Shown piece after piece: positions 1 to 63,348 of a stretch of DNA of 64,000 bases; position 1 is the stretch's first letter, and the number at the start of each line of letters is the position of its first letter. The translations under genes were made by a program, and so were the position numbers. The notes below the pieces were generated by a model that saw only the letters and a list, made by a program, of their open reading frames with translations, searched no databases and was not told the origin of the DNA. Source of the stretch: Paragordius varius (taxonomy: Eukaryota > Animalia > Nematomorpha). Location: the NCBI GenBank assembly GCA_964247055.1, contig OZ176053.1:4154001-4218000 (forward strand). Direction: 5' to 3'.

Positions 1-3000
1 TTTTGACAAACAGTTACATGCATATTTAAACTTTCCAACAAATTTTTGATAATATAGGTAACCAAATACTTTGTGTATACTTCTTTTTTGCTATCATTTA
101 CATCTCGATTCATGACACTGAGAATGAGAGAGTTTATAAATTGATTTTGACAAATACATACATCAGTTGGATTAGTGTCAACTATAGAAAACTGCTCAAA
201 GCTCTTAACATAAGTTGCGATGAGACTAACAACTATTTCACAATCAAGCAACTCCATAAGTTGACCAATAAAATGTCCAATGTTGTAATTCAAATCATAT
301 ATCAAGTTCCTCGCTACTGTATTTTTTGATTTCCCATTTTTATCATTTAGCGTGGTTGGTAAATTGGGTGTATTTGTCAATCGTTGATGCAATTCCGCGG
401 AAACCATGCCAATAAGGGAAGATAAATCATCCAAGAATGGTTGCGAATACGTACATTTGTTCGGACAGTTAGAAGTGTTTATGGTCATTAAAGTGCTGCT
501 AGTTTGCGACGAATTCGTATGTTGTGATTGTGATTTGTAATGTATCATACTCTGTATGATAAGGTTAAAAAAGATGTATGAATTGTTAAGCGAATTCTCT
601 TTAACATCTCCGCTTGAAACTACCCACTGCAAAGCAATTTCTTCATGCAAAATTCGTTGTTTTACGATAACAGCCGTTCCAAACGAAGGGTGAGATTGCT
701 TATTTATTAACTGATTAAAATCATGTTTGCTTAAATCATTTTTATCGAAATCTAATTTATATCCAATGTTTGTGGTAAATTCATTTTTGTTATTGGATAA
801 ATTATTGGTACTTGATAAAGTACGTTGATTATAAATATCTTCATAATCTAGCGAAATGTTTCCCGAAAATCCTTTCTTCATTTTTCGACCCAGTGTACCA
901 TAAGTCTTGGGTATTTCATTTACAGCAGGTTGGTCAAACATTTCGGCAGCTATCAAAGGATTGCTGTGTGAAACCATTTTTGAAAAAGTTTTTTCTGGCA
1001 CCCAACTGTTAATGTAGGCATTAAGACAAGCCTCATAAAAATGTTTATTGCTAGTAAAATCACAATTTATGGGTAAGTTTTTGCTGTTGTTAGCGTTCAT
1101 TTCGGTTGTAACACTGTGAATGGTTTTACCTCTACTACCATGATTATTCCGAAGAAACTCTACCATATAAGCTAAGGATTCAAAAGCAAGAGGGGCCCAA
1201 CTTATGAGATGGTCATCGTGACTCGGCTCACATACAACATATTGACACGCAATAAAATGAACGAATTCATCCAACAATGTAAATAATACGGGATATATAT
1301 GTTCAGCGGTATCCGTTGTTAAATTTTTTAATGCCATAAGTGATTCACGAACACATAAATCAATTTTAGAGGCTAAATCACGTCTTTGATCATGACCTAG
1401 GGGTGGACTCGTGAGATAGGGGTGATGATTACCCAAAATATATTTTTGCATGAAAGCTTGAAAACATGGATGTAAAGCATTAGCATTATTGTATTGGGTT
1501 GTAAGCATATGCCTCAAATATAACATTATATTGGTGCGAGATTCGGTAGTAAATAAGGTTGAATTAACCAAAAGTTCACAATCAAAAGCGGGTTTATGGG
1601 CATCTAACCATCGAATCGATGGTAAAGCTGTATGCGGATCAATGTTAGAATAATGGTTGGGTAGTTTATCCAGGGATATGGGGAGAGAATGTGGCCCAGT
1701 TCGGAACACAAATTGTTGGTAACTTAAAAGTGGTAACCAAGTGTACCCCAGGGATGTCAATGAATGGTTATCGGGCATGAGATATTGAAACTTTCCCTGT
1801 AACATATTCAGTTTAAAAGATAATAATATGAATTATATGTGTTACAAAAAAATTATAGATATTTGGGAAATATACCAATCATAAAACTATGTAAGACAGT
1901 AAATTTGATTTTGTTTAACAAAAATTATTATATTCATATAACATTAAAATGCGCATATTATTAACCTTCCGGTATAATGTTTCGTCATTAAGTTTACCAG
2001 TCTCAGCATTGTTCAATTTGATATGATAAAAGGTGAAGAAAATATGCAAATTTTCATCGGAAAAGAGATGATGTAATGGTATATCAAATTTGATTTCATC
2101 GTAAAACTCTGGTGTCCTAAAAATCATGTAAATATTAAGGTTTCATAATTGATAAAACAATATTTGTTATATAAATTTTACATGTGCATACATGAAATAT
2201 GTTTACCTATTATGGTATAAAACTGTGGTATATATTTCACGCAACCTTTCCCCATCCCTACCCACAATGCATGGAAGTACAGAGTGTATCCCTTCACCTT
2301 TCCGCAGTTCAATTTTGACCACAATGTTACGTGCAGATGACGCATTATTAGCAGAAGAGTTAGAGTTTAAAGGCATAGAGGCGTTAGTATTTCCTGTCAA
2401 TGTTTCATTCATAACGCGATGACAATTTGTGTCATTTAAAGTATTGTTAATCGTGGTTGTATTAGTTCCTCCAGATAAAACGTTCTGAGTTTGCTGTTGT
2501 TGCTGTAAATTTTTACCGTAATTGGCAAAATTAACTTTCTTCGGGTATAAATAAAGTGTCAACGAGGATGATGGTGATGAAATACAGTTTGGATGAAGTT
2601 TTTTAGGGGCTAATTCTTGAGGCAAATCAATCGATAACGGTTTAGTTACTCCATTATCAATATCATTATTAAAAGTTGATATATTAGCAGCATTTAGTGT
2701 TGTAGCGTATTTAGATGTCAAATCTAAACAAGCGCTAGTGGTTTGGGCTGAAATATCAATGGACATATTTATGGGGATACAATTTCGGGCAAATCCAGTC
2801 CCTTTTTTGATGGCCGATATAATGGACGCCGTGGTACCAATCGAATCTCCACCTACCTCATTAATTGGTGATTTAGTTTCCAAAATGTGTTTTATTAGAT
2901 CATCATCACTAATTTTTTCCGAATCCTAGATAAAAAATTATGTGGTATATACCATTTATATAATGGGTTTAGAAAAATTATGTAGGTATAAATATATTTT

Positions 3001-12818: not shown

Positions 12819-21774
<8,956 letters not shown>

Positions 21775-34739: not shown

Positions 34740-37262
34740 TTATATGCCTTTTGTGTTTTGACTTAAGTTTTGTTGTTGTAAATATAAAACCTTAGTCATC
34801 TCATTTAAGAATTGCGATAGTCCCCTGATAGAATCTATGTTAAATTGAATGTTCAATAAAATACTGGGTACTTTTCCATTTTTATCGTTTTTCGTGAAAA
34901 TTTGATCATTTTTCATATTATTGATCGGAATAGTTAGGTTTTTTTGTATGGAGGATTCATTGTTTTTTGTTTTTGTGTTTTCGACGTTTTTGGTGTTGTT
35001 TGTATTTGTAAAATCTGTTTCTTAATTGGTGATATAAATAATCAATAATCACAAATTATAAAAAAATTTTATACAGTAAAATATAAATTGAAGGAGAAAT
35101 ATTTTTTTAAAGGACAACTTATTTTGAAAATCATCAATTTTTTGGAAACTCAGCATTTTGGAATGCAAATTAGGGAAAAGATTAACTTATAATACATCTA
35201 ATTCTATAATTAAAGTTGTAATTTAATAGTTAATGTAGGAAAAATCAAGGTTTGAAAAGAAGTGGATGTTTTTTTATAAAAAAATAAACGTTTTGCCTGT
35301 ATAATATCAATTTTTACTGTATATCACATGGAACAACTCTTTAAAAAACTGCGTTTACAAACCATTGATGTTAATTATATTGCACTCCGAAATATCTAAT
35401 TTGTTATTAAAATACATTGTGTAGTGTGGGTTTTTGATAATTTAACTATCAATTTTCACAATTTTTTAGGTATTATAATCATTTAAAATCACAAATTTGG
35501 AACATATTTTTTTTTGATTTTTTTAGTACAGAATCCCAAATGCTTTAGACCAAAATATTTTGAGAATAATTCAAAATGATAGCAAAACAATCATATAAAA
35601 TTACATTTATAAGCTACAAAATAAGAAATCAGCTTTAAGAATTTGAAAAAAAAGCGATTATTAAATTAGAAAATTTAGGCAAAAAAATAAATTGTATTTT
35701 AAAGTAATTCCTAACACTGAACAATTTTAATTTTTTCTACATATGCCGAAGTTATCATAATTTTAGATTAGTAAATCTTTTAATATTTCATTTCCAGATA
35801 GTATCATTTCAAACTATTTGTCTTAATGGTACCTTATAAAGGCTTAGAGTAAGGGTTTACTTGGTTGATTAGAAACTATGTAAATATATGGCAATCATGA
35901 AAAATAAACACCAATTAAATTGATTTTAGTGGGGTAAATTAAGTTTTGTAAACTATTTTGACACATTTTACAATTAAATGTTTTATCATAAGTAATATTT
36001 TCGATATATTTTATATTTATATTAAATATTTTAACTGGACAATTAGCAGTCATTTATAACGTATGCTTCAAATCCTACACAGATCTATCCATTTTTAAAA
36101 GGGAAGAAGAGCATTATACATTTAAAATTATAGGTTATTGTCGGTCTTTGATTTTTTTACTTTAGTAAAAAAGCATATATTCATTTAGTTTAATAAATTA
36201 TTTTAAAAAAAATTTACTTATTTCAATCAAATTTTGAGCACTCGGGCCAAGCTTTTTGGTAAACAAGAGGAAGCTTTTATTATCATACCAGTTTCTTATA
36301 TGATAATGTACATCATTCAGGAGTGGTTGATATTGCTTCATTGCTTCGTAATCATCTCCGCTATATTTACCACTAATGTTCGGATAATATGGGATGTTAT
36401 TATTAGATCGTGATTTATTTAGAACCGATGATGGAGGGAATATTAGATCCCAAAATGAAGAAGATAGCGTAGTTTGTAAAGGGCTTGGTTGTTTTTGCAA
36501 CACTAGTAAATGATTTAATCTTTCTTTCTCTGGATCTGCCGCATATGGGGGCAGGGACCATGTTTTATCTCCCATCCAATTTTGGATGTAATTTTTATTA
36601 GAGATATTATCGTTATTTTTGAAATTATTAAAATTATTGAAATTCGGCGATGAAAACGCCTGACTAAGGTTACTGGAATTTATTTTTTGATTAATAATGA
36701 TTTTTGCTCCTTTCCAATCCTGTATTTTGGATTCGTTATTCATTTTATCTCCTAAAGTTTGCTTAAATTGCCCATCTTTGGCTATGTGTTGAAAAAAATG
36801 GTCTAGTCCACCCGCTACGAAATTTTTGGTTAAATTAGAATTGATATATGTGCTGTTGGTAAGAGTTGATTGTATTTGTTTTGACTGGTTAAAATTACCA
36901 ATATTCTTATTCACCAAACCTTTTTGCCGTAAAGAATTGTTTTGAAATGTTTCATTGAAAAAAAGTTTGGAATTTGCATCATATAAATTTTCGTGTTTAA
37001 CGTTTATATCCCGTAAAAATGTTTCAATCTGTTCTCTGTTCATATATTTGCCAGGATACTTCTCATAGTTTATATTGGGCACAATCGTATTTGTTTTTGT
37101 TAAAACCAAATTATTCCGTTTAATTCTTCTGTTCTCAAAATTAGAATGCTTTACATCAAAGTTTAATGTTTCCCGAAATATGGCAGCATAAAAAAACCAA
37201 CTAATGAATATGTTAACCTTGAGTTTAAAGGTTTGATAATTAGGCAGATAAAATAATGACAT
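34740..37262 (-). CDS. Hypothetical Asn/Lys-rich, probably secreted protein
   Basis: A 354-codon ORF starts at ATG 37262 with a hydrophobic N-terminal stretch (VNIFISWFFYAAIF) and a basic site RRIKR. A phase-1 donor at 36217 fits an acceptor at 35015/35021, giving a second exon that ends in TAA 34742-34740. The same frame then stays open to 34527. No recognised domain. Confidence 0.55.
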
Positions 37263-39633: not shown

Positions 39634-42600
39634 CTAGTTGGTGCCAAGCCAACTATAAATTACAAATTTTATGAAATATATTGCAATGCAAAGTGTATAA
39701 ATGTGAGATATTTGGCTGTTTTTGGTCGGGCAAGAAGCAGATGAAAAGGTAGCAATATGTCGCAATTTCGAAGATTTTCCAATTTCGTTTGAAAGCCAAT
39801 CATCAAAATTCTCCAACATATTCTTATAATTATTGCCATGTTTGTTCCCGCTTTTATCGGTATTCAAGTGTTCTTGCTTATGCCTGTATTCAATCAAATC
39901 TTGCATATTTTCCTGTTCATATGGATTATAATCATTTTTATTTGTATCTTTGTGAGTATAGTTCAACAATAGAGTTTTATGTTTAACCACGTGGTTAGGT
40001 ACCAGCGATTTTTGCGAAATATAGGATGATATATTATAAAGTGAGCCATTAGTTTTTGTTAAATGATGATAACTATGATTTTTATCAATATTATCTATGT
40101 GATGATGCAACAACCAATATTTATTGTAATAATGGTTATGAGAGGTAGTTTTTACAACTGGGATACGATTTGTGCTAAGTGTCAAATTTTTTATGTACAT
40201 TGATGTATTTAGGTGTGCATTTATTCTATTTTGATCCACCACGGTTTCTGAAAACAGAGTTGTGGAGAGATGCGCCGTAATGTTATCTGGGTACAAGCGA
40301 TAGACATTGGACCAGCTATTAATTGAGTATGAATTATTTCCTGGTATGGATATTGGATGTATATGTTTCATTGTGTCTATAGGTAATATTGGTCTTTTAA
40401 TAGATTGGCATGTAGAGGATGAGGGTAGATTTGGCGGTAGAGTTTGATAGATCATTGGGTAACTATACTGCTTTTCAATTTCAGCCTGTATTATAAAAAG
40501 AAAATTTTAAATATTGTTACAAAATACAGTACCGATTTTATTGTTAGCTAATTCACATAATTTTTGGCCAATTGGCCATACAGTAGCGTATGATAAAAAC
40601 AACAATTGGATGTGAAACAACTTTTATCTCATAGACGAAATTTATTTTATATCATACGCTATTGTATCGCCCATTGGCCAACAATAAAGTGGGTACTGTA
40701 TATTATGGCTAGTAAAAAAATGGAAGAAACTCTTCTAAAATAAATTTAAAACATTGTTATTATAGAGTTTTAGCAAAATTTATTTTTCCTACCGATATGG
40801 GAGAACGCATTATATTGCTACACAGATTGACATAATCTCCACGGGAATAAACAGCATTTAAGTCGGTTAACTTTGAATCTGTCCAATTGAGATTCGTAAG
40901 GTAATTATAAAAGGTTGTGCCATTATCATTCACTTGGATGTCGTAAATTCTGTAGAGAAAAAATAATAAATACAATATAAAAGTTAATAAATTTGCATGT
41001 AACTCAAATTCGACCTATTTAATGTTACATGGGAAAACATCAACAAATATAGCAAAAAATGCGTACGATTTATCGAATTCGTGCATTGGTAGTACTTTGA
41101 GATTCATGGCATCCTTGTCATTATTAAATTTAGTTGTGAATTTATTGTTGGATGTTTTTAAATCAAGTGTTTCAAGTGTGGTTGGCTGATTTCGCAAAAA
41201 TATGTCATAAATTTGGCTGGGAACCGGTTGACTCCGGCAACTGGTAAGCTTAGGGACTTTTGGGTAATAAAACACAAACTGGAGACATGGCCTTTGGCTC
41301 CAGAATATGCCTGACGTTTTGAATCGCGCATTTTCAGTCATCTCCATCAAATCTTCAATGTGTGTTAGATGGGCAAGGGTTTTATTACGATGAGAACTAA
41401 CATTTTTGCGATCAGCAAAAACATTATTTTCCGCATGCAAAAACTTATGTTTGAAATTTATGGGAGATTTAAATGTTTTATCACTTTTTTCGTTGGCATT
41501 CATTAAGGAACTAAGGCTTAGTTTGTGATCTATATGGTCGTATATTTCATCTGTATCATGTTTGTCCAGGAATGACGGATTTTCATAATGGCAACGTGTG
41601 ATTAAATGATCACCCTAGTTTTATAGTAAAATAATGAATCATATATTTTGTCAAAATTTTTATGAAAACCAAAAATTTGTAAATTACTGGTAATATAATT
41701 TTTTGGTTATTCCCATCATAATATTGGATATCTTGAAATTTTTCATCAAAATTATCATCCTTTGCTATGTAATCTATTTCTCGGCCATTTCGAATTTGAA
41801 CCGAAGCAATACGCTTAAAGTTGCCATGAGTATAAAATTGAGACGCATACACCGAAATGCCTTGTGAGGGGAAATCCTAAATTACAATGTATTTTATTAT
41901 GAAAGTCATGATGGCGACAATTTGGAATCTAATATTTTATTTGTATATTTGGAGATTTTTCCGGGTTGGGATTTAAACTTATCTTATTTTAATACATGAT
42001 TATATTTGTGTTATATAATAATTGTATATTTTCTAAATTAAAGGTTCTGCTAAATATTTAGGGTAAAAGGAGCCTTTCTATCCCTTAATTAATGAATCTT
42101 TTAATTTATTAACATTGTTTTCAGTTATACCTATTAATTATATTAAACAGTATTTTATTGATTAACTATATTCCCAATATACTTTAGCTGTACAAAGACC
42201 ATGACAATGTCCTTCAATTGTAAGCTTAGGAACGTTTGGTGGGAAAAAATACCATTGAGTTGGTTCAGGACCGATGGAGAGAACTCCGGAATCATACGTC
42301 CTAAGATCCGAAGTATAAGTGAATTGGAAACCAAAGTGATATGTTTGCAGAGTTTGTTTTACAATGTCTAAAAAAACATAAATAAATTATATATTGGCGA
42401 TAAACGAAAATAAGGCTTTATGTGTTTTCTATCAATAATTCTCATTTTTTTAGTTTGCTTATAATAAATAAGTTTTAAAGTAATTCTAAAGTTGTGTATA
42501 ATTAATATGTTTACTTTTGGTTTTATGTTGCGTTTTTTCCTCCTTATTCATCCATTGAACATTTGATTTATCTAGCAACATTTCCAACATAACATACTTG

Positions 42601-44627
42601 GGATCAGAATCCGTACCCAAGGAAAAGCCGGCTTCAGAGGGCCAATGAAAATCCTATGGAAAAAATATTTTATAGTATTTAGGCACACGTCGATAATAGG
42701 AAATAATAACCAATATATCCTTATTTTTTAATCAAACTTAAATAATCTTAAGTTAAATATAGAGAATTCGTTCTTTAGTTACGAGTAGGGTTGTGCTGAC
42801 TAAGTCGTGAACCAGTCAATTGACCGGGTCATGACCAGGTCAGTGACCATTTATTTTTTGACCATGGTCAATTAAAAAAACAGCTGTTTTTTGAAAAATT
42901 GGTGGTAAATTTTTTTTGGAGGAGTGATAGTAAAATTTTATTGTTTTTTAATATATTTTTTATTATAAATTAAATGTATATATTTATTTAACAATATGAA
43001 ATTGTTAAACGTGCAACCTTTAACATTAGCATTTAAGCATATCCAGTTATTTCGAAAAACATTACAATCAAGCACTTTGCAAAATATGCAATTATTCCAT
43101 ATATGTGAACCAATAAAATGAACAAACATTAATAATTGGATATTTCAATGATGAAAGAAAGTGTATAATAAGCTAGGTAAAATTTTATTTGAAATATCCA
43201 GTATTCTATGTATTTTAAGATTTAGAAGGCCACAAACATATGGCAAAATTTATTTGAAAAAAAATTGATTAAATTGGATTGAAAATATTTGTAATAATAA
43301 ATATCAAGAAAATGTATAATACAAACTTTTAAGAAAAGACATAATTAGTGAAACGCAAGTGTCGTTCATACATTATTTTCGTCTAATATAGCATGATATT
43401 TATTTAAGTAAAAAGTGGTCATGACCATGGTCTGACTGGGTCTGACCGGACTTTTTTGAAAAAGCAGTCAAATGCACAACCCTAGTTACGAGTTTATTAT
43501 TATAACTTTTTTGATCATTAAAGTCAATCTAATTCGAAACCTCATCTCCTCCTACGGTGTAACCAGTGATAATATCATTGCAAAAGTACATATCGGGTGG
43601 GAAAGTGCCTTGATAACATGGAAAAATTGAATCCAAATATTCTGTTGGATATTCTGTTCGAGGTGAGCAGGCATATAACACGGCATGTTTAATTATACCC
43701 GAATCTAAAAACGTGGCTTTTTCGTTCGATGACATGATGGATTTTGCTGCATCATTGTACATTTCAATTGAACGCTAGAAAAAAATTATTTTTTTATTAT
43801 ATAAAGTTTAAATCTACAAAATGAAGGTTTTTGCTACTCAAGTTAATGTATATGTATTATGCGAAAATTAAAATATGTAATTATTTATTTATAAATTTTT
43901 TACAAAAAATATTAATATGTTTAAGGCAATACATCATGAAAATCGATAAAAAGAAAAAAAAGGTTAACAACATTTTTATAAGGGCGCCGATTTGAATCGG
44001 CCTAATGACCACCTAGATATCTCCATTAGCACGCAATTATCTATGTACAATTTTTCCAGGAAACAAAGGCAATAATTTTTTAACACATTTGTAAGCAGTT
44101 GGTCCAATTTATCATTCCTTACGGATATTGAAATTAAAGAGTAAAATGTGCTAATTTTCATTTGAGAGTTTTTTTGTAGCAAATAGATTAATATGTTAAT
44201 GATTTAAATGTTATTGAAAAAAATATAATATTATAAGTATATATTCTGTCTCCAATTAATTATTTATGATTTTTAGCAATTTTTAATTCTTGGTGTAATC
44301 AGCCGTAACCTTCACTCATATTTAGCTATGATATTAGGTTTTATTAGGTATATATAATCCTTAATTTGTTTAATATTGGGTATCAAAAATTTGGAAAATG
44401 TTTAAAAAATATTTTTCCCAGATAAAATATAGAATGGTTTATAAATAAAATTGACACCTTAGTAATATGACGTTTTGAGTTATGACCGGATTGAGCGGTC
44501 GAATTAGTTTTGAAATCCGGAAGAGCAAATAATTGACATATGTAGGGCATATTTTTTACCAAAGAAAACTTTATTCCTTCAAAATACATGTTTTCGATTT
44601 CAATCTATTTATAAATGATAAAATTAG

Positions 44628-44673
<46 letters not shown>

Positions 44674-46656
44674 TAAATTTTAGAAAAGCTTTAATTAAAA
44701 TTGTTTAAAATATACGTACTTTCATATCGAGTGAAAAAGTTTCATCACCCTGCCGTGTTATTTTATGATTCTCATAACTGTTTTTGTTAATAGTTAGGGA
44801 GCCATCATTTGAATACAATTGATTATTTTCAACAACTATGGATTTTTGAATCCGATTCTCTGATATTTCTTTGGTGTCAAAAAGCGTACCATTCCAAAGT
44901 GTTTCACCGCTAAAATCTTTTACCTGGTTATTTTCACTTTTTTCTTTAGTTTCTCGTCTTTTATTAATTAATTGTGTTGGTTTTTGTTGTGGCCTGTCTA
45001 TTTTCCGCTGAGTTTTGTGTTGATTTAACAAATATATGGGTTTAGAACGGATTAATATGGTATTTATGTCATCACTTTTAGTATTGTTAGCATTATTCTC
45101 GGCTTTATGAGAAACGATATGTAAGCTATTTAATTCGATGACATCATTGATCTGCGTTGTATCGAGAAAGCCCCAATGAAGGTACATACTATTACCCTAT
45201 GGTAAAAATACACAATTGATAAATTTGACTTAATATTAGCATATTATATTATGAATATTCCAACTATCGTAATTGCCATTATTTTGGTGGCTTACGTTTT
45301 TTAAACCGTGTTTTCTATTATATACCTTAAAAACACTATTTAGTTTAAAAAGCTTTAAAATCTACTTTCAAGTGTAATCGATCCCTTATTTTGGCAAATA
45401 ACTGTTTCTTACCTATGTTTTTCACAAAATAAAGCCATAAAAATATCTTGAAATCCTGTATTATTATGGATATTATTTCCAGTCCAGCGTACACCACTTT
45501 TTAACCACAAAACAACAAAAATCTCATTAATATTCATTAGGATTGGTGATATGTGAAAAAAGGAAAAGGCATTTTAACATAAGGAACCAACTTAACTAGA
45601 ATATATTTTCACATGTATGATTAAAACAGTGCGTTGCGTTTTCTAACACACGTAATTGAATGATCAGAGAATCTGTGGTTATTAAACCATCAACCTTAGC
45701 TAACTTAAAATAAAAATTAGTAATAATAATTTTTATTGCTCTGTATTTTTATGGTATAAGTATCATGACCAGAAAAATTAATTCTTCCCTCTTTTCCTTT
45801 CCCATATACCTGTCTATATATCCTAATCAAAATTTATTATGCAATATTTTCCATTTACCAAAAAAATCAATCCATCAATCAATCAATATATACTACAAAA
45901 AATTAATATATTTTAAAAATAATTTTTCAAAAAATTTGTCAAAAAACATATTTCGTATAAAGGTGAGAGAAGTCTTACAAACTTTCTCACATAAATTATT
46001 ATCATTATCATTATTAAAATTCAATTATAAAATAATATTTAATTTTGTATTAACAATAATTCAAATACTTAAAATATAATTATTATTTGGTTTAAGCAAA
46101 TACAAAGCACACAATTTTTAGCAACAACAATTAAAGGATAATCATAAATATTAATATTATTAGATAATAATTAAATTGAATAGAGTAAATATATTGGTAA
46201 AAGAGATCTTTTAAGTATAATCAAGTATATTTTTTCATATTTATACCAATTAAAAATCCTTTTAACTAATAATATGGCTCTATAATTTTCAAAATATAAT
46301 TATTTAATAATTTGTTTTATGAATTTTGTAACACCTCATTATCAGTATTCTTATATCAATAAAACTTTTTTTATAAGGTGAAAAAAATATTATTACAGGT
46401 AAATATCATACTATAATAAAATAAAAAACGATAAATTGTTTTAGCAAGTCAAATTTATGAAAAAATCTTACTCAGTATTTTTCGACTAATTTTTTATTAA
46501 TTTTTTTTATTATAAATTTAAAAAACCCAAAATAATAATAAAACATTTTTTAATTTGCTTATAGTATTCCGGTACTAAAAAATTATACAATCAATTTATT
46601 AGTCAATAAGAGATTGAAAATTAATGGACTTTATAAGAAAAAATAACTTTAAAAAG

Positions 46657-46689
<33 letters not shown>

Positions 46690-49357
46690 TGTACCACACA
46701 CTTTTAAATTTTTACTTAATGAATCATACAAACTCGAAATATGTGTGTGTAATTACAAAAGTATTAACATGACATGTGTCACCATTAGATAATGCTAATA
46801 TACATTTCCTACTTGTTTTTTTTGGTGCTTATATCATAAGAAAAAACCGCAAAATTATTCAACAATATAATTAATTTAAAGTAAGTACCATGTCGGAATA
46901 AATTATTTTTTACAAGATTTCCTGTTTATTTTTAAACCATTACAAAACACACTGACCAATACACCTCTTAACCTCTTATAGTATATATATTTGATTTTAA
47001 TCTACTTATTGTGAATAAACTTTTTAGTTCTGTCCATAAAAAACTTTTTGTCATACGACAAATAGATGTTAAGGAGGTCGGCCGCCAAAAATTAGCATTT
47101 AAATGCGAAAAAAATGATCCATATTTTGTTTGTTAGATAAAAAAAAGTTTTTTTGCGACATGTTGAATAAATATATATATGAACGTTTTGAAAAGAATGC
47201 GGTCATTTTAACTTTATTTTATTTTAAATAAATGATTCTTAGAAAATTAGAGTAGTAAGTTTACCGGAAAAACGGTTTGAGGCGAAACGTACCAATTATT
47301 AACGAATAAACAAACAAGTGTAGAAAGTAAACTTTATAATTTGTGTCCTACATTTATTTGAAGAAAAAAATTGTAATTTTTCAATTTAATGTAAAAAAAT
47401 TTAGTATGATACGTCTTCGTGGTACTTTCAAGATGTTACGTGGACAAAAACGGAAATTCTTTAATGTAAATATATCTATATATATGTAGCAAAATTGTAT
47501 ATAGGAAAAAATTTGACTAAAAAAAGGAAAAGGTGAAAAGGCAAAAATACCATTACAATGGTATAGTATCATTTAAACATCTCTTATAATTGGTGTATAT
47601 TATTTTCAGGTATATAAAATTCAATTTCAAATGCATATACATATAACTACAAAAATCCGTTATCAAACATATTATGTAACAAAGGGACAACCAATTTTAT
47701 AATTTTATACGTGTAAGACTTAATTAGACCCTTCGCATTTCCGGACACGATATGTTATGATGTTTAGATATTGTATTTGTTCTATTTTCACAAAATAATT
47801 ATCCCAAAATGTTATATATATACATATATATACTAATAGAATATGGCCTAAAGAAATTTATACTACTACATAGGGGCTCATAATTTTTTTCCAAAAAAAT
47901 GTTAATTCTTACGGTAATGGTAAAATCCAAAGGGTCACACGTCTCTAACCGTCTAGTAAAAACGATATCTGTAAAATTTTGATTTTGACGTCCTGAAATT
48001 ATTTGATAGTTTTGGGCCTTATCAACTTTCCAACCAACAACGGTGTTTTTCAGTGATCCATCCTAAAAAAATGGATAATATAATTAAAACATATTAAAGT
48101 ATTTATATTGGCGAGTTAAAATTAAGATGTACCCTAAATTTAATATATTATATCTGTCATATTATGATTAGCCTTCAATATTTATTCTAGCTTTTCATTA
48201 AAATTTAACATATATTGCTAAAACAATCAAATCTTGATTTTTGTTCAGCAATATGCTGACATAAAAATGACCTGATTAAAAGGTCACATTTTACAAAACG
48301 CTATTGATTGCAAAATTAAAAATCATTCATTCTATTGTAAATATATATATATATATATATATATATACACTTGAATTAGTATTAGTAAGTAAAACAATAT
48401 TTGCAGATATCTGCTGCCTGCTTCATATACACACGTGGCCCTAATTATATAATAAAAAATATTAATCAAAGTTCACAATCCCGTTATCTAATCTAAGTCA
48501 TCTTCTGTGAGCCACACTCATTTTTTATTATATCATCAATTTTTTAGTGTGTTAATTAATATATATATAAATATTACAAAATGATTCCACATAAACTTTT
48601 TTCGATATAAAATTAAAGATGATTACATATGTTATCTAATCTTGCCTTACCTTACTTCAACATCCAAAATCACTTTGAAGTCTTTACCAAATCAATGAAC
48701 TTAGATATATACCTTAAATGCAATTTTATTTTATTTTGATAAGTGGCATAAATAAATATTTGTTTGAACTTTCTCTATTGTTAAATAAAGTCAAAAACTC
48801 GACCTACCCATATTTTAATCAAATATTTTTTTCCAATTTACAATATTGCAATAGAACAAATGTCTATCTGCTCTTATTATAATATAATATAAAATATACG
48901 TATGTGTCCTACATTCCATCATTCAAGCTTATTTATATAAAAAAATATTGAAAACAAAATATTTAAACCACAATTACAATTATATACATATTTCAAAAAT
49001 ATGACAATGTTTGACACCTGTCCCCTCATTCCCTCCCTATTGTTCCAGATATTAACTATTTTGATTCATTGAAATTTATGAATTCGAAATAAATTAATTA
49101 AAAAATAAAATATTTATATTATAAATATGTATAATTTAATATAACAATTGATGTTTGGCAATGAAATAAATATACCATACTTAATTTGAAAAAATTATCT
49201 ATATTGAAAAATTTAAAAATATTGAATGAAAAAAAAAATTAAAAAATATTTAAATTATAATTCCATTTAATCTTATAAGCTCATATGCTTTTTTATTTCA
49301 AATGTAAATCTTTATCAGGTTTTAAAACGGTATAAAGTTTTTTTCAATTCAACAAGT

Positions 49358-49413
<56 letters not shown>

Positions 49414-51996
49414 AGCACTTTTAGTTTATCACACACACATACACAGTTTCAAAAATTAAAACTTGAAAGATATTATAAAATTATTGAATAGGATAGGATT
49501 GAATCATTGACACCGAAACTCTAAAATACGATTTTTTTGCAAACATACATTGTTGTATCATGTATGATAACAATGCATAATCCACTTTAAATTGCACTAC
49601 TTTTCTATTTTCATTATATACCTGTTGTAAAAAATATATTTGATGATACAGTTTTTTTATTTCAAGATAAATTCCTAAAATTTATAAATGGTCGTTAAAC
49701 ATAAAATATTTGTTTTGAAAAAATAAACTTTTTTTAGTTGATATAATAATTGTTTCAAATATTATAAATGCATATAAATCAGTTCAAGATTGTTGGAAAC
49801 TACTAGTATTTCTTTTACGGGATTAAAAATGTAGACAGTTAAGTCTACATTTTTGAGAAAAAAAACCCAATATTGGTAGGTTTAACTTACATAAATACGT
49901 GATTCGAAAAAATTAAACAAATTAAAATTAATTAATAAATGAAGAAAACTATATATCATCAACATCATACAACAAAATACATCATCTTACATGTTTGAAA
50001 CAATGTAACTAACAGCTAATATTCCTAAACATCAAAACATTTTTATAAGATTGGCGCCTTACTAATACACCATAATTTAATAAAAATACATAATTTATCA
50101 TTAAACTCCCCCCCCCCCCCCCAATATCTTACATAAATCAGAAAAGATAACTGTATAGTATATAGACATTTTTATGCTAATTCAGTTGCATCAAAAATAT
50201 TGGATTAGAGTGCTTTAGCCTATTTCGACATTGCAAGTTAAAAATCATATATTATAAAAAAATCTAAATTAAAATATATATCTTTATTAATTATTTTGAC
50301 CAAAATAAATGTACAATTTATAGGTTAATTAAATTATGAAATGGCAAAAGGTGAAAATGGGGGATTAGATAGAGTTGAGTTAAATATAACGGTAAATTTA
50401 TTACATTTACATAAAATATTTAATGAAATTGATAACAGTAGAAAAAATGACCAATATCGTCAACCGGAAAATTAACTCCGTCTAATTAATTTTTCTTATT
50501 TAAAAATTTATTTTTTATAGAATGAAACATTTATAAATCATAAAATCTAAGCTATATTTTGATAATATGTAATAAAATTTTTATTCCCATTAATGTAATT
50601 AATTATCAATATAATTACGATAAATAAATTATTATGAGTGTGTGTTTTCCATTTCAAAATTTTACAGTTTTACCATTGGCGACACGGTGTTTTATTGATT
50701 TAAGCTATTGTAAAATAAATTTTTTAATAAAATAGCTGATAAATTTCAACATTAAGGCACTGACTGATAAAAATTAAATTCCAAAGAATTGTTAAAATTT
50801 ATTTTTATTATACAAGTATATCAAGAAAAAATATTATTTATATGGAAGATATCGTAATAATACTTTCTTCTATTATGCAAGTGTCAAAAGCGGCATGTTA
50901 CAAAAGATGATATATATAAATAATAACACATATAATTTATTGTTGGTATAATTTATAAAACAAATAATTTTTATTTTTGTAAAGGACCTCTCTCTCTCTC
51001 TGTAAAACAAAATAAAATAAAAAAACTTTGTGTTTTATAAAATAACGTTTATTATACCAGTATAATATTTTTATATATCATTGTATGTCGTAACTTTTTG
51101 TTTGCATGTTTTAATGACCTTTTGAAAATTGCATTTTTTTTTAAACTATTGTAACATTACCAGAATAATTCTTGAATAAACTAATGTTTAGCCAATAAAC
51201 ATATTTGCAAAATTACAAATCGAATTACCAAATTTTAGGTTAACTTATAACTTTACATGTTAAGAGTAATAATTCTATATGTTCGTGCTGCCTATGTGAA
51301 TTTTAGCAAATCACTGTGAGATTTTTACACAGTATCGATTGACCAGTTTAAAAAATAAGTCACATGCTTTATAAAAAAATTACATAACAAAACAATAACC
51401 ATAGTATTTTTTACTGATATAAACAGTAAATTTTCTCTTTATATTAGTTTTTGATCGAATTTAACATTTTACAATAAGGACTATTTTATCTGTAATAAAA
51501 AAATTATTTATATTAGAGAACGTTATATTAACTGGGATACAAAAAAATTTATTAAAAAAATATTATATTTTACCTTTAAATAAGTTTGTCTGTCACTTTC
51601 ATTTATCCATGTGTATAAAAGATCTACATTTTTTAGTGTAGATTTGCCAGAAAATCCAAATGCAATAAGTCCTTTAGTTTTAACACGTAGTCGGACAGTA
51701 ATGTCTGAAAGATTAATATTCCATTGGATAAGATAATCGCAACATTTAATAGTTTTTAGATTAGAAATATTATTATCATCAATATCAGCATATTCTAAAC
51801 ACTTTTCAAATGGAAAATCTTCGAGTGAATTTTGGTTTTTTTCCTTGGCGAAATTGTTGCTAAATAAGGAATGACTATTGGCCTGAGTAATCAACAACAA
51901 AGTATTGGATAAAATTTGGATCATTATTAAATAAAAGGTGACGTTTCTTCTGAAACCCATTAAGCGCCGATTCCAGAATGCTTTATAAAATTTCAT
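39634..51996 (-). CDS. MOXD1: DBH-like monooxygenase (MOXD1-like): signal/anchor, DOMON, Cu type II monooxygenase N and C domains, hydrophobic C-tail; ~1,170 aa, copper ligands degenerate
   Basis: Exons (minus): 51996-51574, 48062-47913, 45196-44720, 44604-44458, 43774-43541, 42653-42515, 42367-42183, 41876-41688, 41614-41067, 40949-40793, 40485-39634. All are GT-AG and phase-consistent. Motifs: GLIAFGFS, FTRRLETCDPLD (DOMON), YICQLF, YACS..PCY..FC..GYTVGG, AGFSLGTDSDPKYVMLE, LRTYDSGVL, EGHC..LC, GISVYASQ, DDNFDEKFQ, ILPGDHLITRCHY, CLQFVFYYPK. Confidence 0.9.
40564..40681. mobile_element. ~115-bp MITE with ~30-bp TIRs in the last intron of the MOXD1-like gene
   Basis: GGCCAATTGGCCATACAGTAGCGTATGATA is inverted as TATCATACGCTATTGTATCGCCCATTGGCC. 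Confidence 0.7.
42786..43484. mobile_element. hAT non-autonomous element with perfect 8-bp TSD
   Basis: TIRs TAGGGTTGTGC / GCACAACCCTA with identical flanks GTTACGAG (42778-42785 and 43485-43492) and subterminal TGACC/GGTCA repeats. The internal part recurs at ~59020-59420. Confidence 0.92.
44632..44669. repeat. (TA)n microsatellite
   Basis: Long TA run in a MOXD1-like intron. Similar runs occur at ~46659, ~48342 and ~49339. Confidence 0.9.
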
Positions 51997-61459: not shown

Positions 61460-63348
61460 TTATATATATGGTTGCCATCCGGCAAAAAGTTTGCTCAAAT
61501 TTTTAGGATCCATGGCTTCTCGTATCAAATGATTCACCTAAAAGCAAGAAAAATAATGGATAAAACATATTTATAAAAATAAAATAGGGACAAAATATGC
61601 ATTTATGTTTTAATAACAACTTACATGCCCTTCCACGCTCATATAATGCCCATCTTCTAAACCTTGGAGTTTTTGTTTGACACGCAGGATAACTCTTTCA
61701 GCCAATTTATTTGTATCGTTAGGGTTATTGGATGATTTCACTTTTGATTCCATATTTTGAGTTTTTTGATTACTGTTGAATTGGGAAACGTCAATTTTTT
61801 GACGTTTATTTTTATCGACTCTTTTGTTTGTAGAAAGTCCAACGCCATTAACAATGTTGTTATTATTTTCGATTAAATCATCATTATTAGGTCTTTGCTT
61901 TTTCATAATTTGATGTGGTGATAAAGTCCATATATACAATGGATCATATAAAAATATTTCAAGAATTGTCAAAAGCGATTCATAATTATCACGAAGTAAT
62001 TGGAGAGATTTTTCGCATGTTCTAAACGGTTATTTGAACAAAGTCAAATTAACTTAAATTATGGTTGATGATATACAAAACCATTAATTTAGTTTTTTTA
62101 TCCCTAATTTATTTTGATAATAATTCAATTTGTAAAAAATACCGGACCTGACAAACAAATATAAAGACATATATTGGTAGTGTGCGGAAAAATATTAAAA
62201 AACAACTCTTAGGCCAAAAATAATTAAAAGTCTCATAAATTTTAACATATATAGATATAATTTAATAATAAAAAACGCGCATCTAAATCAAATTACGTGG
62301 AAAATAATTTATTCTATAAAATTTAAAAATAGCATTTACAAAAATATTTCTAATTAGGCTATTTACAATTCATAAAAATCAATCGTTTCTAAGCATAGTT
62401 ATACATAGAACAAATACATTTTTCAAAAAAAGAATAAAATTATTTTAGAGGTTTGCCCCTACAATTAAATCCAATATACTGAAAATTACTTTCTAAATTT
62501 CCCTTCTATACCAAAAATACCCATTCCATTGACCACATCTCTAGTTAAGCGGAATGGAACGGTTTCAGGGGTCGGCAATAACTTACCTTGTTCAAACGCC
62601 ACACCTAGATCGATATGAATGATTTTTCCCGTATTTTTTTGGATCAAAATGTTTTGCACATGTCTATCGCCCAAACCAAGGATATATCCAGCTGTAAGAT
62701 ATAAATAGGTATTCATCAAAAATATTTGTTTTTTTCCTCTAATTTTAAGGAACGAAATTAACATTACAGACAAAAATAACCAAGCATTTACTAATTCACA
62801 AATCAAATTTATTGGAATTGTCAAAGAGAAAAAAAAATCCTCTCCCTTTGAAGGGCATGTTGGCATAAAATGCATGTTCAGGAGTAGAAAAACATTGTAT
62901 AAAAACTATATATTTAATTCGGTAAATATTGCAATTAATTGCAAAAAAATTAACAAAGAAATCAAACGATTGACTGGTAAATTTCGGAATTGTAAATTGC
63001 AAAATAGTAACCATAATTTTGCAATTAATTATAAATCATAATCGTTATTTATTCTACAAAATATAATTAATATCTACCAAGATACAAAACATAAATCGCA
63101 CAATATTGGGTAAGAATTAATTTTTTACTCAATAGTTATAAAATAATTTCAACGTAGGATCTAAATTCTTAAAAAAGCAGTGTTATTAAATAAATACCCA
63201 TTGATGTCATAGCCACGCTTGCTGTGTATGCACTTCTTTTCATAACCCATTCTTGAGGATTAACAAAGTTTTCAAAGAAAAAACTATGCATAACAGGTTT
63301 AAAATGACGGCAAATATCCTGGTAGGCACTTAATTTGTCGGACGTTGT
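61460..63348 (-). CDS. ATM: Serine/threonine kinase ATM, PI3K-like kinase C-lobe and FATC domain; 5'-partial
   Basis: Exons (minus): 63348-63198, 62691-62490, 62021-61625, 61537-61460 (TAA). Motifs [80 protein letters not shown] and [30 protein letters not shown] are ATM-specific rather than ATR-like. Upstream exons lie outside the window. Confidence 0.96.

Follow-up and report, generated by a model that had tools for sequence, protein, structure and literature searches.

A DBH/MOXD-like gene of the hairworm Paragordius varius that probably encodes a maintained pseudo-monooxygenase

The stretch of DNA analysed here (the window) covers 64,000 nucleotides of the genome of the hairworm Paragordius varius (Nematomorpha; assembly GCA_964247055.1, contig OZ176053.1, positions 4,154,001 to 4,218,000 of the forward strand) and contains, on its minus strand, a gene related to the copper monooxygenases TBH, DBH and MOXD1. 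The gene extends over window positions 39634-51996 and comprises 11 exons that join into an open frame of 3501 nucleotides encoding 1166 amino acids (aa); all ten introns have GT-AG borders and their phases agree. From the N-terminus to the C-terminus the protein consists of a signal or anchor segment, a DOMON domain, the N- and C-terminal Cu2_monooxygen domains (CuH and CuM) and a hydrophobic tail resembling a glycosylphosphatidylinositol (GPI) signal. The original prediction for this locus had described an intact 11-exon frame with a hydrophobic segment at each end, and both points are borne out by the gene model; its interval of 41285-43690 does span the substituted codons discussed below, but falls well short of the whole gene. 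As far as can be judged from sequence, the gene is probably a selectively maintained pseudo-monooxygenase, in which four of the six copper ligands have been replaced.

Exons were located by tblastn, guided by proteins of TBH and MOXD type drawn from a library search, and the junctions were read directly. Exon 1 (51574..51996) provides the start codon, the signal or anchor segment (residues 18-36, 51945-51889) and the first half of the DOMON domain, while exon 2 (47913..48062), recovered by tblastn to TBH- and MOXD-type proteins and bounded by GT-AG borders, provides the second half and ends in RRLETCDPLD. Exon 3 (44720..45196) encodes the linker between DOMON and the catalytic core, including an insert of about 110 aa rich in N, K, E and Q. 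The CuH domain begins in exon 4 (44458..44604), where MPYIC aligns to TTYWC, and continues through exon 5 (43541..43774), which carries the HH-motif region, and exon 6 (42515..42653), which carries the LEVHY region; both of the latter are recognised by the PF01082 profile and by alignment to the family. The CuM domain starts in exon 7 (42183..42367) with a block running from RTYDSGVLSIG to GHCHGLC (tblastn E 1e-6; the phase-1 junction with exon 6 was checked), proceeds through the HxH exon, exon 8 (41688..41876), identified by a PF03712 match and by alignment to the human DBH structure 4ZEL, and is completed in exon 9 (41067..41614), which retains the YYPK motif, has RPC (41293-41285) in place of EMC and contains a His-rich insert of 79 aa (41569-41333). 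The 3' donor of exon 9 and the coding status of its insert are inferred from the sequence. Exon 10 (40793..40949) holds the conserved C-terminal block from NLNW to NLC, and exon 11 (39634..40485) adds a 283-aa extension rich in N, H and K, then a stretch of small residues and the hydrophobic tail (residues 1142-1160, 39711-39655), which the stop codon follows.

The frame is open in very AT-rich surroundings, with a GC content of 0.22-0.35 across the window and of 0.34 in the exons of the gene versus 0.23 in its introns. Stop codons make up 7.9% of intron codons, and at that frequency the probability of 1166 codons without a stop is 2e-42; the three lineage-specific long exons taken singly give 2e-6 to 8e-11, with exon 3 (159 open codons) and exon 11 at the two ends of that range. 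Hydropathy analysis finds just two hydrophobic segments, one per terminus, at residues 18-36 and 1142-1160; small residues and a variable spacer come before the latter, in the manner of a GPI signal. The model protein also contains 20 N-x-S/T sequons and low-complexity inserts that sum to about 470 residues. Sensitive tblastn detected no second copy or tandem paralogue of the gene in the window, and no active TBH/DBH partner gene was seen there.

Membership of the DBH family is supported along most of the protein. Exon 1 matches PF03351 (DOMON; E 9e-7, 29.5 bits), slightly below the curated cut-off of 32.7, and exon 8 matches PF03712 (Cu2_monoox_C) with 36 bits (cut-off 23), as well as human DBH (4ZEL) with E 2e-5 and 27 bits over 50 residues. 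PF01082 (Cu2_monooxygen) is matched by exon 5 over profile positions 44-98 (20.5 bits) and by exon 6 over positions 98-126 (23.4 bits), each singly below the cut-off of 30, and phmmer searches of the PDB with exons 5 and 6 each by itself gave no usable match. BLASTP with the whole model returned a TBH-type protein as the best match (2e-29, 30% identity) and a MOXD-type protein at 3e-26.

For residue-level comparison the model protein was aligned with 120 TBH/DBH sequences, the best-scoring of 1300 matches, and 120 MOXD1/2 sequences, giving 241 sequences in total. Of 46 columns near-invariant across both subfamilies, the model protein retains 35, including every near-invariant Cys (7/7: C183, C435, C464, C578, C656, C758 and C774) and 10 of the 11 columns in the DOMON region. 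The expectation that structural Cys and the DOMON domain had been kept is thereby confirmed. The 11 lost columns include four copper ligands together with the neighbouring changes E756R and Y511W.

In human DBH the CuH site is formed by His262, His263 and His333 and the CuM site by His412, His414 and Met487 (PMC4846438). The family profile placed on 4ZEL assigns the HH motif to His262 and His263, LEVHY to His333, HTH to His412 and His414, and EMC to Met487. In this order, the ligand columns of the 240 relatives hold His in 239/240, 240/240, 240/240, 238/238 and 238/238 sequences and Met in 238/240, whereas the model protein has K428, H429, Q510, Y600, H602 and P757. K428 (43690-43688) stands at His262, beside the retained H429 (43687-43685); Y600 (41834-41832) stands at His412 and H602 (41828-41826) at His414, a placement also obtained when exon 8 is aligned directly to 4ZEL; and P757 (41290-41288) stands at Met487. 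The equivalent of His333 depends on the alignment: the large alignment treats seven residues (MLLDKSN) as an insert and sets VQWMNKE against VHYNNPE, which puts Q510 (42557-42555) at the ligand position, whereas a small ungapped alignment pairs LEMLL with LEVHY and puts L503 (42578-42576) there. His is absent under both. The K, Y and P substitutions had been called correctly in the original prediction, to the exact codon, and are supported by alignment and 4ZEL alike; the fourth had been given as L503, which is right in its coordinates and in the absence of His but is not the residue preferred by the large alignment.

Four of six ligands are therefore lost, and CuH and CuM each keep one of three. 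The loss is concentrated on the ligands, since 4/6 ligand columns are affected against 7/40 of the other near-invariant columns (Fisher p=0.023), which is the pattern expected from sequence if catalysis, and not folding, had been freed from constraint. Only three non-canonical ligand states occur among the 240 relatives, each at a single site, and these come from an isoform model, an odd local alignment and a short model. One of them, a swordfish MOXD2 isoform model (P0209), is the sole relative among the 240 to have a residue other than His (Arg) at the first position of the HH motif, which may mean that MOXD2 independently lost a ligand a second time, or that the model is in error.

The position of the protein within the family was assessed with IQ-TREE (LG+C20 with posterior mean site frequencies, PMSF; 41 rows, 580 columns). 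The model protein falls outside the TBH/DBH clade, which has 100/100 support, in a poorly resolved MOXD grade, and no starred clade of the tree holds it; its best identity in the tree set is 29%, to a coral MOXD1. Five of eight columns that discriminate the subfamilies match MOXD, none match TBH and three match neither. The branch is long, which renders the placement insecure. Forcing union with TBH/DBH costs 1.2 log-likelihood units, so that a sister position to that clade is not rejected (approximately unbiased (AU) test, p=0.32). On sequence grounds the gene is thus DBH/MOXD-like and probably of the MOXD type, TBH orthology being undemonstrated, on a branch about six times the median; the earlier MOXD1-like label is plausible on the discriminating columns but is firmer than the AU test allows. 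Horizontal transfer from an insect host was considered and rejected, as there is no arthropod affinity and the best identity is the 29% to coral MOXD1.

Compared with MOXD1/2, the hairworm protein has the same arrangement of DOMON, CuH and CuM between an N-terminal signal or anchor and a C-terminal hydrophobic tail, and its SLGT..DP.YVM.E block resembles that of vertebrate MOXD1, which itself ends in a terminal hydrophobic tail. It differs in being about twice as long, at no more than 29% identity, and in having lost four ligands where all 120 MOXD1/2 sequences keep six, save the three single-site odd models. With TBH/DBH it has in common the fold, the domain order and an ASQ-x-x-TH-type motif, but the ligands are invariant in all 120 TBH/DBH sequences and the hairworm protein has none of the TBH-specific discriminating columns. 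C. elegans tbh-1 is listed in a review of copper biology as orthologue of human DBH, MOXD1 and MOXD2P (PMC11083455). PHM has the same two-domain copper catalytic core, and the family profile matches PHM structures, but PHM is a far more distant relation that lacks DOMON and retains its ligands. There is also a parallel in kind with pseudoenzymes such as the copper-less viral pseudo-superoxide dismutase (pseudo-SOD), in which likewise the enzyme fold and an open frame are kept although residues for catalysis or metal binding have been replaced. No description of a ligand-deficient member of the DBH/MOXD family, or of this gene in hairworms, was found in the literature searched.

Constraint on the gene can also be gauged from polymorphism. 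Variants were derived from contigs of four public DNA runs, which represent at most three samples from two studies, and the counts rest on the 40 best-supported differences, with 334 further ones beyond these. Within this list the exons contain 18 non-synonymous and 16 synonymous variants, a ratio of non-synonymous to synonymous polymorphism (pN/pS) of 0.28 (binomial p=4e-4), or of 0.35 (p=0.002) when the mutation spectrum observed in the same data is used. Exon 11 outside a cluster of variants in the tail has 7 synonymous and 2 non-synonymous listed variants. The divergence of the gene is, on sequence comparison, gene-specific: genome-wide saturation was rejected as its cause on one control, an exon for an ATM-type PI3K-like kinase 20 kb away (62489-62875, minus strand), which remains very near human ATM (107 bits over 69 residues, compared with the 27 bits over 50 residues of exon 8 to human DBH).

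Hydroxylation by PHM and DBH is coupled two-copper chemistry that needs a His3 site and a His2Met site. As read from the sequence, the hairworm protein can form neither a canonical His3 site at CuH nor a canonical His2Met site at CuM; coupled hydroxylation should therefore not run, and the protein is most likely catalytically dead. The fold, meanwhile, appears to be kept by selection, as indicated by the retained Cys, the DOMON signature, the 35/46 near-invariant columns and the low level of non-synonymous polymorphism. Because the ligands are gone but the fold appears constrained, the role of the protein is likeliest to be non-catalytic. The preferred reading, to which a probability of roughly 0.6 is assigned, is a non-catalytic secretory protein of DBH/MOXD1-like fold that is held on a membrane and acts by binding. 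Such a protein would enter the secretory pathway as a type II or GPI-like protein, fold like DBH or MOXD1 and probably be glycosylated, and would remain anchored on a membrane, facing the lumen or the cell exterior; there it would not bind two coppers in the canonical way and hence would not hydroxylate, and would instead act by binding through the DOMON domain, the former substrate cleft or both. The dead-paralog idea of the original prediction stands as regards the copper sites and the retained fold residues; the status of paralog to an active TBH/DBH partner finds no support within the window, and the suggestions of ligand, receptor or regulator roles are speculation. To rank the gene as the best candidate for an undescribed system was an overstatement, as the gene belongs, in degenerate form, to an enzyme family already known.

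Several observations weigh against a maintained pseudo-monooxygenase. The loss of activity is deduced from established knowledge of PHM and DBH. The terminal branch of the model protein is 4.1 against a median of 0.64, about sixfold, and comes with large low-complexity inserts, so that constraint on the gene is at least partly relaxed. The variant list is a best-supported subset taken from contigs, and an alternative haplotype has seven variants within 30 bases at 39689-39718, six of which change the amino acid; this cluster sits in the spacer and where the C-terminal hydrophobic tail begins, which would suit a GPI-type signal tolerant of sequence change. The exon-9 insert (residues 664-742) is a weak point of the reading and may be nearly neutral or even intronic: it differs from a related sample at 11/190 bases, an intron-like rate, where exon 8 differs at 0/166, and 5 of its listed variants are non-synonymous against 2 synonymous, yet it is open and has an exon-like GC content of 0.33. 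The assignment of P757 is unaffected by the status of the insert, because the Pro codon is not parted from the Cys codon by any acceptor (AG). All sequencing runs in which the locus is present have the character of DNA, with introns and exons covered alike and no spliced joints, and five small runs from the same species guessed to be RNA contained none of the sampled words of the gene, which speaks weakly against strong expression in the samples concerned. A full HMMER pass with exon 8 over 1.8 billion representatives recovered no orthologue; it missed even the window's own protein and yielded 10 weak matches, 7 to ordinary DBH-family proteins or fragments and 3 to spurious bacterial repeat proteins. 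The open frame of exon 9, used in a word-index search, likewise gave no match.

Many of the same observations could be read as the early decay of a unitary pseudogene, once a TBH or MOXD gene, that is now less constrained, has lost its function and has yet to acquire stops or splice defects; the lineage is known to have lost many genes. The loss of four of six ligands with the adjacent Glu and Tyr, the sixfold branch, the roughly 470 residues of low-complexity insert, the intron-like divergence of the exon-9 insert with its 5:2 excess of non-synonymous variants and the lack of signal in the small putative RNA runs all fit such a course. This is nonetheless unlikely. An open frame of 1166 codons across ten canonical introns would be very unlikely to persist without selection where 7.9% of intron codons are stops; every conserved Cys is retained, pN/pS is about 0.3 and synonymous variants predominate in exon 11 outside the tail cluster. 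Furthermore, the change from Met to Pro takes three base changes and runs counter to the AT bias, which suggests that the ligand loss is old and that the frame has been open since. The original view that the gene is maintained and not decaying accords with the long frame, the canonical splice sites and the low pN/pS.

A rebuilt metal site, in which the His/Met-rich insert, H429, H602 or a C-terminal His cluster supports some other copper or metal chemistry, is improbable. One His is left in each copper site, the insert at residues 664-742 is 10% His with an M-x-M about 20 residues before a conserved Cys (HLTHIEDLMEM) and a short way upstream of the lost Met, and in the C-terminal extension (39637-40485) His makes up 7% of residues, eight of them falling within 995-1024 (40152-40063). 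None of the 240 family members examined (0/240) uses other positions, however, the insert is fast-evolving and polymorphic in its residues (M686I, A729V and others), and His-rich low-complexity tracts are possibly mere composition. A slimmer chance still is given to a bolder idea, that of a surface-anchored dead amine-hydroxylase fold at the host interface, serving as a sink or sensor for tyramine, dopamine, octopamine, ascorbate or copper, or else carrying a new metal site built from the insert. Least probable of all is an artefact of gene model or alignment, with a true mRNA that uses other exons or tiny introns to restore the ligands: the junctions are predictions from DNA, the exon-9 3' donor and 79-aa insert are inferred and exon 6 does contain a 21-nucleotide GT...AG segment (VQWMNKE), but excising that segment yields no His, exons with intact motifs that might be used instead or in mutual exclusion were rejected on finding one copy per motif exon in the window by sensitive tblastn, no AG separates the Pro and Cys codons, and K428, Y600 and P757 lie within well-aligned blocks beside conserved residues (the Cys of LYAC, ASQ..TH and C..YYP).

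Elsewhere in the window, an open frame at 2206-2883 (minus strand) matches the DOCK-C2 domain and is part of a DOCK gene, and two frames of 400 and 354 aa at 14170-15369 and 36201-37262 (minus strand) lack a Pfam match and are unlikely to be open by chance in such AT-rich DNA. Within intron 5 of the DBH/MOXD-like gene, the interval 42620-43620 reaches, in each of the four runs, a summed contig depth up to about 1000 times that of its flanks, and contigs there show many joints and loose ends. The interval is a dispersed repeat of very high copy number, not a tandem one, and a long terminal inverted repeat was not detected. The palindrome CAGCTG occurs 7 times in the window against 2.4 expected, with 0 in the 3.5-kb coding sequence of the gene and one in intron 5, at 42881.

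If the preferred reading is true, an intact and constrained family member with four ligands replaced would be a natural experiment on what DOMON and the two-domain fold do without copper chemistry. Such a copper-free fold would bear on MOXD1, which has no known substrate. Furthermore, should this prove to be the sole DBH-like gene in the genome, the standard route to octopamine and noradrenaline would be closed to the animal.

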